Shown here one piece after another: positions 622 to 47,749 of a DNA stretch of 64,000 bases (position 1 is its first letter; every line of letters begins with the position of its first letter). The position numbers and the translations under genes were made by a program. The notes beneath the pieces were generated by a model. That model worked only from the letters and a program-made list of their open reading frames with translations. It was not told the origin of the DNA and made no database searches. This DNA is from Podarcis melisellensis (Eukaryota), in assembly GCA_964234715.1 (NCBI GenBank), contig OZ174290.1. One strand, 5' to 3'.

Positions 622-798
622 GGGAAGGTAAACGGCGTTTCCATGCGCAGCTCTGGTTCGCCAGAAGTGGCTCAGTCATGCTGGCCACATGACTTGGAAG
701 CTGTATGCCAGCTCCCTCAGCCAGTAAAGCGAGATGAGCACTGCAACCCCAGAGTCATCCGTGACTGGACCTAACGGACAGGGGTCCCTTTACCTTTA
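622..798 (+). mobile_element. Sauria SINE, 5'-truncated (3' half)
   Basis: GGGAAGGTAAACGGCGTTTCC...CCCCAGAGTC...GACTGGACCTAA...GGGGTCCCTTTACCTTT; homologous to the full-length copy at 28034-28399; ACCTTT tail. Confidence 0.9.
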
Positions 799-26862: not shown

Positions 26863-27355
26863 TCATTACTACAGCAATAATTCCTGATAATAACTGAGGC
26901 AGTGCCTACTTCGCAAGGGAATTTTGCAAGCCCTCTGGTTAAGCTGTGCCACCATGCCTGGGAAAGAGTCCAGGTTGCCAGTATTATCCCATATATTTGG
27001 CATAGAGCCAAATTATGTGCATGTTTACTGGACTAATGTATTGTTTGGGAATCCAGCCTTGCCTTATGAAGGGCATTTCAGCTCCATGTGGTACACTTGG
27101 ATCTGCTCTTTATGAGTGCCACACAGAGATAGTTGAAGAATGCTCTTCTTTCCAAGCACCAGATAAGCCCAAGGCATGGTGAGGTGCTTTTAGTAGCCCA
27201 GGGCAGCTCTAACAGGCTAAGGCTCTCAGAGCTTTGAAGTCATCTGAGGATGGAGGAGGAGGAGGAGGAGGAGAGAAAGAAGAAGTAGTTGTTTCTTCTG
27301 AGGTGATCTCCCTTGGGGATGATGAATTGGTAAAGAAGAGGACCAGAACACGAAT

Positions 27356-27555
27356 GGGCGGTAGCGCAGTGAGTGGTACAGCATCTGCTTTGCATGCAGA
27401 AAGTTCCAGGTTTAATCCCTAACAGCTCCATGTAGTGCTAGGAAAGACTCATTGCCTGAAACCCTGGAGAGTCACTTGTCAGTCATTGTAGACAGTACTG
27501 AGCTCAATAGACCAATGACTTGACTCATTAAAAGGCAGGTTCTTATTATCCTATG
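27356..27555 (+). mobile_element. tRNA-derived SINE with CR1-like tail
   Basis: A box GTAGCGCAGTGAGTGG, B box GGTTTAATCCC, body CCTGAAACCCTGGAGAG...ACTGAGCT..ATAGACCAATG. Confidence 0.8.
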
Positions 27556-27676
27556 CTAATGCAAAGGAGTCTCCTTTGCCTTGAACAGACTGCATTGCAG
27601 TGCTAAAGTCAGCACTGTGAGGTCTCATCTGTCAACATGTGACAGGGATGGGAAAGAAATCTGCCAAATTGTGGAA

Positions 27677-27907
27677 GGACCATAGCTTGGTGGTAGAACA
27701 TATGCTTTGATGGAAAAGGTTCCAAGTTCATTCAAAGTTGGGCTGGCACCGATTCCTGCCTAAAACTCTGGAGAATTGCTGCCAGTCAGTGTAGACAATG
27801 CTGAGCTACTTATTTATATTTAAACAACATTTGTATGCCACACAGTAGTGGCTTAAAATAACAACTAGGTGGACCGATGCTATGACTGAGTATAAGTCAG
27901 CTTCCTA
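27677..27907 (+). mobile_element. tRNA-derived SINE (same family), degenerate
   Basis: CATAGCTTGGTGGTAGAACATATGCTTTG...GCTGCCAGTCAGTGTAGACAATGCTGAGCTA...CAGCTTCCTA. Confidence 0.75.
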
Positions 27908-28033
27908 ACCTCTGGCTGCCTTACAACCTACGAGGAGCCTTAACGAATTAGCCAAGATTTAGAGGTTTTGAATGTATATGTGTGAGAGATTTGTAGGGCT
28001 GAGAGTTATTTAGTACACATACAATGCAAACAA

Positions 28034-28399
28034 GGGGACGCAGGTGGCGCTGTGGGTTAAAGCCTCAGCGCCTAGGACTTGCCGATCGAAAGGTCGGCGG
28101 TTCGAATCCCTGCGGCGGGGTGCGCTCCCGCTGCTCGGTCCCAGCGCCTGCCAACCTAGCAGTTCGAAAGCACCTCCGGGTGCAAGTAGATAAATAGGGA
28201 CCGCTTACCAGCGGGAAGGTAAACGGCGTTTACGTGTGCGGCTCTGGCTCGCCAGATGCAGCTTTGTCACGCTGGCCACGTGACCCGGAAGTGTCTCCGG
28301 ACAGCGCTGGCCCCTGGCCTCTTGAGTGAGATGGGCGCACAACCCCAGAGTCTGTCAAGACTGGCCCGTACGGGCAGGGGTACCTTTACCTTTACCTTT
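28034..28399 (+). mobile_element. Sauria SINE, full length, young
   Basis: A box GGTGGCGCTGTGGG, B box GGTTCGAATCC, CpGs intact, (ACCTTT)3 tail; left TSD copy TACAATGCAAACA at 28020-28032. Confidence 0.95.
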
Positions 28400-28559
28400 T
28401 AATTAGTAAGTGGGCTATGATTCCTCTCTCCACCAGGCCTAGGGTGGGGCCTGACAGGCTTCATAAGAACTGCTGCTTCTGCAGCTGCCCAGCAAGGACT
28501 GGGGTATTTTGGGGGAAATTTGTCAGGAGTTGTTGCTGTTATTGATACAATTTTTTTGT

Positions 28560-28729
28560 ATACTTTTATGTGGACATTGTTCAGTTTGGTTATGTAGTCT
28601 TGATGTGTTTTATTTTCATGACTACTTTGCTATATTCGTAACCATAAATCTTTTCATATTGTAAGCCGCCTTGAGTGTTGTTTTAACGGTGGAAAGGTGG
28701 CATTTAAATAAAATTATTATGATGATGAT
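28560..28729 (+). mobile_element. L2-type 3' tail
   Basis: TGTAAGCCGCCTTGAG...GAAAGGTGGCATTTAAATAAA + (ATT/GAT)n. Confidence 0.65.
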
Positions 28730-28731
28730 TA

Positions 28732-28998
28732 CCGTATTTTTTCTGTGTATTATACGAGGTTTTTTGACTCAAAAATCACGTCCAAAACCAGGGGTCGTCC
28801 TATACACGGATGTGGGGGGGGGGGAAGTGGCGCATGCACGAGCACAACTTCCCACGATCTAGGAGTGTTTTCTGCCCGCAGCTGCATGGGGGGAGAAGCT
28901 CAACAACTTTGGGCCACCTCCTCTCATTTTCTTAAAATTGAGTCCCCCAAACTGGGTGGGTCTTATACATGGGACGTCTTACAGATGGAAAAATGTGG
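28732..28998. mobile_element. old Tigger/pogo-type MITE
   Basis: TA + CCGTATTTTTTCTGTGTAT ... GTCTTA..GATGGAAAAATGTGG degenerate TIRs related to 18177-18927. Confidence 0.7.
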
Positions 28999-29159
28999 TG
29001 TCCAAAAGCAACAAGAGAAAAGGAGCAATATGAGCAAAGGCAGGTGTGAATAAAGTGGGACTTACTGAACCAATAATGGATTGTGACCATTTTCTTTTTC
29101 CGGCACAGAAATGGCACGAAGACTACAGTTTGTTTCGCAAAGTATCGATTTACCTCTTA

Positions 29160-29258
29160 ACAGTGCTGGCCCCTGGCCTCTTAAGTGAGATGGGCGCACA
29201 ACCCCAGAGTCTGTCAAGACTGGCCCGTACGGGCAGGGGTACCTTTACCTTTACCTTT
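29160..29258 (+). mobile_element. second copy of the Sauria SINE 3' end
   Basis: 97/99 identical to 28301-28399; followed by TSD TACAATGCAAACA (29258-29270). Confidence 0.95.
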
Positions 29259-29935
29259 ACAATGCAAACATACAACACACATACCCATCTGCTTAGTAAG
29301 TTGGCATGTATGTTGGGTAAAGCATGTACAGAATTGTGGTTTTGCAGCAGTGCCTCTACCAAGCCTTACTTGGCAATGCAAGCAAGCAGACTTGGGGAGC
29401 TTCCCTAGCTATTCCTCTGGGCTGCCTTGCTCTCGCTGCAGCCACTCTCCCACGCTTTCTCCTTCCATCCCTAACTCATATCAGATAGCTCTGCCTTCGT
29501 CTCCCCAGATAATCCTTCTCTGACCGCTTTGCCCAGAATCCCAAATTGAATGACTGCTCTTCAGAAATGAGGATTAGCGTGTTGATGGGATGAGTTACAC
29601 ATGGCCACAAAGGTCACCCCTGAAGGCCAAGTTGCTCAGAGTCTGTGTGCATATCCACAAGGGAGAGAGACGGAGGGATTTAATGAAATGGAAGAACCAG
29701 GCAGCAACACCCGTCTTGAAGCAAGGTGCAATTTATTTAATAGCTGGTGGCATTCAGCAGGCTGCCATGGCTGATTTTCTTTTCTTTTTTTTAATGTTGG
29801 ATGCCAGCAAAGGAATCAGAGTTGCTTTCCCCAGATGTGTCGGGTGTTTTGTACCTGTGTGTGCATGCACACACAAATGCACAGGACACAAAGCATTAAA
29901 AACTAGTTAGAACCTGCTAACCTCTTTCCAAGTGC

Positions 29936-30614: not shown

Positions 30615-30672
<58 letters not shown>
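30615..30672. repeat. (CT)n microsatellite
   Basis: directly visible. Confidence 0.97.
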
Positions 30673-30677
<5 letters not shown>

Positions 30678-46790: not shown

Positions 46791-46937
46791 TTTCCTTGAC
46801 CAGCTGTTTAGCCTGCCCATCTCCAGACATAAGCAGCTTCAGTCAACTACTATCAGAAACTTGATTGGTCTAATCTGTTCAGCCAATGGAAAGCAATATC
46901 TTCCCTACCCTTCCTTTGATAGTTAGGCTAACCTTAG

Positions 46938-47108
46938 GTAAAGGTAAAGGGACCCCTGACCATATCTACTTGCACTTTGACGTGCTTTCGAACTGCTAGG
47001 TTGGCAGGAGCAGGGACTGAGCAACGGGAGCTCACCCCGTCGCGGGGATTTGAACCGCTGATCTGCTTATCGGCCAGCCCTAGGCTCTGTGGTTTAGACC
47101 ACAGCGCC
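46938..47108 (-). mobile_element. Sauria SINE with large internal deletion
   Basis: tRNA head and body up to CAAGTAGATA joined directly to tail TGGTCAGGGGTCCCTTTACCTTTAC; 8-bp TSD AACCTTAG (46930-46937, 47109-47116). Confidence 0.9.
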
Positions 47109-47749
47109 AACCTTAGTGTGTTACAATACTTGTGATGCATTAGTACCACTGTGTATCTTGGGGGTTATGAATGGGGAGGTCAGAGTGATGGTGCTGAGTT
47201 GAGAACAAGAGGAGGAGGAAAGTGGCAGTACATTCACTGTAACACATTTTTCAAGGGCAGCAATTGCTTTGATTTCAAAATCCCCCCCAAACAGAAACAG
47301 ATGAGAAGAAGCTCAGAAGCATGTGAGGTTGTTGTGGAGGTACTTTGGGATGCTGGTTGTTAACACCATGACAGTTTGGATAACAGGTTCACTGGCTCCC
47401 TTTTCAATTCTCCTGACATGTCAGTTTTGCTCAAGGGAAGCTGGGTATTAAAAGCTCAGTGATGCTCCATAAATTCTTCTGGGGAAATGTGAGGAGACTG
47501 TATATTTTCATTCCTCTGCTGGAGAATCCTGGCGGGATACATCAAGATGCATTTGGGAAGGTGCACATCTGGAGATGGGGTCATAGCCTAGCAGGAGAGG
47601 ACATGCTTTGCAAGCCAAAGGTTCCAGGTTCAATTCATGGTAAGTCCAGTTAAAAGAATCTCTGGTGGAAGATCTTAGAAACTTGAGAGGCAATGGCCTT
47701 ACGCAGTGCAAGGCAATGTAATTTGTAGTGTAAGTGTTTAGTGTGGAAT

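Follow-up and report, generated by a model that had tools for sequence, protein, structure and literature searches.

The window (the whole 64-kb stretch of DNA that was analysed) harbors a composite of 1,238 bp, in which a full Sauria SINE is followed by 760 bp of other DNA and then by the end of the SINE again, the whole being bracketed by an exact 13-bp repeat. The features of the composite are listed below.

28009-28021, plus strand: Tn-TA target signature of the Bov-B/Sauria type, read from the sequence, with the signature as given in PMC13295347
28020-28032, plus strand: left (5') target-site duplication of 13 bp, TACAATGCAAACA, of which the empty alleles have one copy
28033-28399, plus strand: full-length Sauria SINE of 367 bp, assigned by sequence, contig depth and comparison by eye with P. 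muralis copies
28301-28399, plus strand: last 99 nt of the SINE, first copy (repeat finder)
28382-28399 and 29241-29258, plus strand: first and second SINE tails, each of three ACCTTT units (sequence)
28400-29159, plus strand: 760-bp copy of a locus elsewhere, unique in the window, with donor pieces in four runs
28731-28999, strand unassigned: possible MITE-like element of ~270 bp with weak terminal inverted repeats of ~25 nt (local score 19)
29160-29163, plus strand: right-junction microhomology ACAG, common to the donor and to SINE positions 269-272
29160-29258, plus strand: last 99 nt of the SINE, second copy, with a three-unit tail (repeat finder)
29258-29270, plus strand: right (3') target-site duplication, which shares its first T with the tail (sequence and empty alleles)

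The 13-bp repeat adjoins the 5' end of the SINE on the left and the second SINE tail on the right. Behind the first tail it is missing, the sequence from 28400 onwards being TAATTAG, and the copy at 29160-29258 is the sole SINE sequence that adjoins the 3' duplication. For two element boundaries specified beforehand, the probability of a 13-mer match by chance is about 4^-13. The two 99-nt copies are identical at 97 of 99 positions, and both close with three ACCTTT units; the two mismatches are C/T at 28305/29164, within a CpG, and G/A at 28324/29183. No further copy of the 760 bp was found within the 64-kb window. A preliminary description had proposed one duplication around a full SINE, the 760 bp and a second SINE 3' end, with the repeat present only behind the second tail and with two SINE ends of equal tail length and 97/99 identity; every one of these structural statements was confirmed in the sequence and with the repeat finder.

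According to Nakatsuka & Ohshima (2026, PMC13295347), Sauria SINEs end in (ACCTTT)n, and their target duplications begin with T and then A about ten nucleotides downstream of three thymines. Both traits of a Bov-B-mobilised Sauria SINE were found here: each copy ends in three tail units, and a TTT at 28009-28011 lies 9-11 nt upstream of the T-A (28020-28021) that opens the target-site duplication, of which the empty site carries one copy in four runs. Judged from its bases, the outer target site fits the published Bov-B/Sauria signature, and because the outer duplication bears it, the frame of the composite can be regarded as an ordinary SINE insertion with a full-length 5' end. The SINE itself is called full-length because the family homology, seen in thousands of contigs and at very high contig depth, starts at about 28035. 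A near-consensus box A (28045-28055) and box B (GGTTCGAATCC, 28099-28109) were recognised by eye, with no tRNA reported there by ARAGORN or Rfam; both programs, run on the SINE and on the whole window, returned nothing at threshold. Approximately 190 nt at the 3' end of the SINE appear almost base-for-base like P. muralis copies in the supplement of PMC13295347, a comparison made by eye with three incidental copies. Two older, partial Sauria SINE copies lie in the window (622-798, and 46936-47109 on the minus strand), with 74 % and 83 % identity to the young SINE. Their tails comprise 2 to 2.7 units, which indicates that tail length varies between copies.

The flanks of the composite were found in runs of eight organisms, and four of these runs were compared over 27400-29900 on the basis of the best-supported contigs: X1, which bears the same species label but comes from another sample and another study, and X2, X4 and X13, from three related species. 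In each of the four, one single-copy contig joins 27779-28019/28020 directly to 29258/29259 onwards, with a single 13-mer and nothing between the flanks. The contig in X1 (record 2) is 481 nt long, has a depth of 10.7 compared with about 11 for neighbouring unique contigs, and is wholly explained as an empty allele. The flanks differ from those of the window at 5 of 1,237 positions in X1, and by approximately 2-4 % in X2, X4 and X13.

These precise empty sites in four runs settle that the 13-bp repeat is a real target-site duplication. As they occur in a sample of the same species and in three related species, the whole 1,238 bp is one derived insertion, and since it is missing from another sample with the same species label, it is very young. 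The orthologous empty site with a single TACAATGCAAACA, for which the preliminary description had suggested looking, was thus found in 4/4 runs, and the finding that would have told against its reading, namely the 760 bp in place at orthologous loci without the SINEs, did not materialise, all four runs being empty there. Old DNA already in place beside a coincidental repeat is ruled out by the same empty sites. A plain-SINE intermediate allele was not seen among the contigs listed for the four runs. In addition, at 27931, 27944, 29040 and 29812 all four runs, X1 included, share a base unlike that of the window; these are changes specific to the window haplotype, and 29040 lies inside the copied 760 bp. 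Compared with the window, the flanks in X13, the most divergent of the species examined, are longer by 11, 17 and 8 nt at 27731, 29335 and 29377, respectively; these small insertions look like ordinary indel divergence.

A very improbable explanation is that reads from a plain SINE and from the donor locus were mis-joined during assembly. The composite junctions are known from the assembly, and X1, the sole conspecific compared, is without the insertion. However, a mis-join driven by repeats would not lead back, exactly 760 bp later and from a point of 4-nt microhomology outside any repeat, to the tail of the same SINE with the matching duplication behind it. The structure appears to carry the hallmarks of biological junctions and not of assembly ones, which makes an artefact unlikely.

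A short high-copy repeat lies just upstream of the insertion site (27736-27819, also 27400-27567); in all four runs its contigs add up to a depth about 2,500 times the single-copy value. Numerous contigs diverge at 27808, and joints between 27471-27476 and 27777-27782 are likewise numerous. A tRNA-like match under the Rfam threshold (RF00005, 23.9 bits against 29) at 27355-27430 may be the head of another tRNA-derived SINE, and a perfect (TC)29 microsatellite occupies 30615-30673. Many contigs of X13 join a SINE tail (29253-29263) to a SINE head (28032-28043) with 1-30 nt between them, for example TACCTAATAT or AGTA. Head-to-tail SINE pairs thus seem common, which points to an attraction of new Bov-B nicks to the sequence immediately behind the T-rich tail. 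As the contigs of relatives show SINE heads so close behind SINE tails, we considered whether the 760 bp and the second SINE end had entered together by a second target-primed insertion behind an existing SINE tail; this is disfavoured, as no second target duplication flanks the two.

Concerning the source of the 760 bp, a single-copy contig matching 28923-29163 was found in each of the four runs (X1 record 5, X2 record 20, X4 record 28 and X13 record 14), and single-copy pieces covering 28486-28778 were found in the related species; taken together, there is a single-copy donor for at least 28486-29163 in the four runs. By contig depth in these runs, moderate repetition extends over 28408-28995, and strictly single-copy sequence is confined to 28996-29159. 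A retroposon-tail-like stretch (~28640-28730) and the possible MITE-like element, within which contig depth is raised at 28828-28995, both fall in the moderately repeated parts in all four genomes. The segment in the window differs from the X1 donor at 2 of 241 positions, in line with allelic diversity. In all four runs the donor contigs continue for 82-251 nt past 29163, unlike a SINE tail, and they are unbranched at 29163. A protein word search with a frame crossing the left junction yielded no candidates, and an exact-pattern scan for the donor's upstream flank in metagenome contigs gave no match.

Our comparison showed that the 760 bp were copied from an older single-copy locus at another place in the genome. 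The donor locus is ancestral, as it is present in genomes without the insertion, and the composite is derived; the donor homologue has no SINE 3' end behind it. The earlier proposal of a young SINE insertion with DNA derived from another locus therefore holds, the site being empty in four runs and the ancestral donor present in all of them. As the donor contigs do not branch at 29163, there is no second copy of the composite in the four genomes. A multi-copy mobile chimera, for which several composites bounded by target-site duplications had been envisaged as evidence, is ruled out there, the region of the segment and its right junction being single-copy and the contigs passing 29163 unbranched.

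The donor also bears on simple 3' transduction, in which a SINE read-through RNA would have extended through the 760 bp to a downstream SINE end, possibly giving a multi-copy chimera. The layout is superficially like a SINE, its flank and a priming tail within one duplication. However, the donor runs on past 29163 without a SINE tail, so that in four genomes the donor segment does not end in a priming tail, and Pol III could not read through the segment, which contains 13 runs of at least four T (a T7 and two T6 among them), in addition to a T4 formed by the SINE/segment junction itself. We consider this explanation extremely improbable: Pol III read-through and plain 3' transduction are ruled out by the T-runs together with a donor lacking a terminal SINE piece. 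The point made in the preliminary description that T-runs speak against Pol III read-through is therefore upheld, and the plain 3' transduction that it had offered as part of one of its models is excluded.

At the right junction, the donor match reaches 29163 and the SINE homology begins at 29160, which leaves a 4-nt overlap, ACAG. The 8-mer CCTCTTAA occurs here at 29153-29160 and again at 29177-29184, as the preliminary description had reported, but its reading of this octamer as a signature of templated repair did not stand. The first copy is native donor sequence, the donor contigs matching through 29163. The second copy needs the A at 29183 for its completion, and the same variant occurs in a P. 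muralis Sauria SINE copy (GGCCTCTTAAG, PMC13295347 supplement). In addition, the junction itself made use of another homology, the 4-nt ACAG. For these reasons the signature is weak, and the octamer match is probably coincidental. A 12/13 match between TTAGTAAGTGGGC and TTAGTAAGTTGGC was likewise set aside, as 2.3 kb should contain about 1-2 matches of this kind by chance.

Three models had been outlined for the composite: repair by strand invasion of an ectopic SINE copy, 3' transduction or template switching during retrotransposition, and templated insertion with a 99-bp duplication. With the exception of plain 3' transduction, all of these still fit. The most likely mechanism, which we put forward tentatively and without great confidence, is a repair templated by another SINE copy and its flank. 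A Sauria SINE (A) would first have inserted normally, and a break would then have arisen in it, at or upstream of SINE position ~269. Because a hemizygous new insertion would have no allelic repair template, the left broken end would have invaded a near-identical SINE copy (B) elsewhere, and extension would have proceeded through the last ~99 nt and the tail of B into 760 bp of its 3' flank. The released strand would then have rejoined the right broken end by annealing at ACAG. Such a process would combine homologous invasion on one side with microhomology end joining on the other (i.e., long-tract ectopic gene conversion plus end joining), and its product would be a SINE that is a mosaic of A and B, followed by the flank of B and the last 99 nt of A, all within the original duplication of A. 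In a variant of this pathway, the nascent second strand would take the same detour during the integration of A itself.

Several observations are consistent with repair from an ectopic SINE. The left junction lies exactly at a complete SINE tail, which would be automatic if the 760 bp flank another SINE copy. The junctions are those that such a repair would leave, with the left one in continuous SINE sequence, the right one at ACAG and a 99-nt repeat of the recipient. The precise empty site, the single-copy ancestral donor in four runs and the 4-nt microhomology at 29163 all agree with it, as does the signature of the outer duplication, by which the frame is an ordinary SINE insertion. The segment starts with TA (28400-28401) like the target duplications of Sauria SINEs (PMC13295347) and hence resembles a SINE 3' flank, but this is weak evidence, as the T at 28400 could be the fourth U of the terminator tract of the SINE RNA. 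The copying of flanks from ectopic templates is, moreover, experimentally established (Nassif et al. 1994 and Richardson et al. 1998, as cited in PMC4888836). On the other hand, two rare events, an insertion and a break repair, would be needed in the short time since the haplotypes split, and the contigs listed include no plain-SINE allele as an intermediate. The identical three-unit tails would also have to be a coincidence, as the other copies seen carry 2-3 units.

The two mismatches between the 99-nt copies bear on whether these copies came from one SINE or from two. They were found although the flanks differ from X1 at just 5 of 1237 positions, and the P. muralis variant at one of the two sites suggests two different SINE sources. 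Repair from an ectopic SINE would explain this 2 % difference, for which the insertion itself is much too young. Given the mutability of CpG, however, two mismatches in 99 nt would be only mildly improbable for a true duplicate (an estimate of ~0.05-0.15). A true 99-bp duplication of the SINE's own end around a templated insertion, with a donor lacking a SINE, is an explanation that we regard as unlikely. It could have arisen by a template switch of the MMBIR/FoSTeS type, by the capture of a fragment where two nicks lay 99 nt from each other, or by a second target-primed event in the opposite orientation, nicked at the boundary between tail and duplication and leaving a 99-bp target duplication. 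The tail length is indeed identical in both copies, and both mismatches fall in the first 24 nt by the junction (estimated p ~0.06), as error-prone repair could give. Furthermore, on the minus strand the boundary between tail and duplication has TTT at -10 to -8 followed by T|A, which is Tn-TA-like. Nevertheless, unless an endonuclease nick accounts for it, the left breakpoint would have to fall precisely where the SINE ends. Two differences in 99 nt also exceed what would be expected of so young a duplicate, and one of them is a variant known from a P. muralis SINE copy. The variant with a second event in the opposite orientation would additionally demand that an RT of the stringent type copy an RNA without its cognate 3' end.

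Two SINE sources would also be involved if the composite arose in one retrotransposition with two RT template jumps, yielding a tripartite chimeric retrocopy, an explanation that is possible although we incline against it. At the nicked target, the Bov-B RT would have primed on a SINE RNA, copied the last 99 nt of this RNA, switched at ACAG onto an unrelated RNA from the donor locus, of which 760 nt would have been copied, and then jumped onto the 3' end of another SINE RNA that was copied to its 5' end; integration would have left the single 13-bp duplication. Tripartite chimeras formed by double template switching of a LINE RT have been described as B2-U6-L1 in mouse and WEIRD-MgSINE-MGL in Magnaporthe (Gogvadze et al. 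2007, PMC2104539), and the layout here is that of these direct-repeat-flanked structures. All parts are co-oriented within one canonical target-site duplication bearing the endonuclease signature, the part at the 3' end is a 5'-truncated version of the element on which the RT primes, and the 5'-most part is complete at both ends. The composite is absent as a unit from four genomes, with no intermediate among the contigs listed, which makes one event parsimonious. The two mismatches between the 99-nt copies would fit two different SINE RNAs, and a microhomology of 4 nt is usual for RT switches.

Against two template jumps, the middle template would have to be a low-abundance, non-coding and repeat-rich RNA, and nothing at 29159 looks like a natural 3' end, AATAAA being absent within 30 nt. 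The TA at the start of the segment would be due to chance, and the literature that we found documents no such chimeras for Bov-B or other RTE-clade elements. RNA folding of the SINE gave no useful hint of a switch point. That the Bov-B RT made the composite in one integration, as a SINE-bracketed retrocopy of an arbitrary cellular RNA, is conceivable but rather doubtful in our view, and a repair templated by another SINE copy and its flank remains the mechanism that we tentatively prefer.

Our analyses thus present a natural example of ordinary single-copy DNA whose copy was carried to a new chromosomal site by a dispersed repeat, and show that Sauria SINEs are able to duplicate ordinary DNA into a new place. 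Empty site, ancestral donor and the two junctions can all be seen here, and the event is so young that another sample of the species lacks it. If repair from an ectopic SINE is correct, SINE homology seeds a repair that drags in flanking DNA. If the RT jumped between templates, the RTE-clade RT joins a process so far documented mainly for L1-type and fungal LINEs, and if the product is a SINE-bracketed retrocopy, lizard genomes with 'stringent' LINEs could retro-duplicate unique sequence without poly(A) recognition.

Compared with known systems, the composite is a new variant of known processes and not a new kind of element. It shares with ordinary Sauria SINE insertions made by Bov-B (PMC13295347; Nishiyama & Ohshima 2018, PMC6007223) the ACCTTT-repeat tail, a 13-bp duplication that opens with T-A about 10 nt past a TTT, and the full-length 5' end, but differs in the 859 extra bp, consisting of the 760-bp segment and the repeated 99 nt, between the tail and the 3' duplication. 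As in LINE and SVA 3' transduction, a single target-site duplication surrounds both the element and additional DNA that does not belong to it; here, however, this additional DNA lies between two SINE segments, Pol III terminators fill it, and the donor is without a terminal SINE piece.

The tripartite chimeric retrocopies (PMC2104539) likewise comprise three co-oriented parts in one short target-site duplication, with a 5'-truncated RT template at the 3' end and a complete copy of a small RNA at the 5' end. In the present composite, by contrast, the outer parts on both sides belong to the same SINE, the enzyme would presumably be the RT of Bov-B, a member of the RTE clade that recognises the 3' end in a sequence-specific manner, and the middle part is 760 bp of ordinary, repeat-rich single-copy DNA instead of an abundant RNA, its RNA origin being hypothetical. 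In the systems of ectopic break repair reviewed in PMC4888836, P-element gap repair (Nassif et al. 1994) and mammalian long-tract gene conversion (Richardson et al. 1998), non-homologous flank was copied after homologous invasion, and end joining completed the repair. Those systems have in common with the present structure one junction in homology and the other at a microhomology of a few nucleotides, as well as a partly duplicated recipient and a donor flank copied without loss of the donor. They involve induced breaks in reporter constructs, whereas the composite described here would be a natural germline event with a dispersed SINE as the proposed homology; the recipient SINE is so young that it is absent from a conspecific, and the SINE on the donor side is putative.
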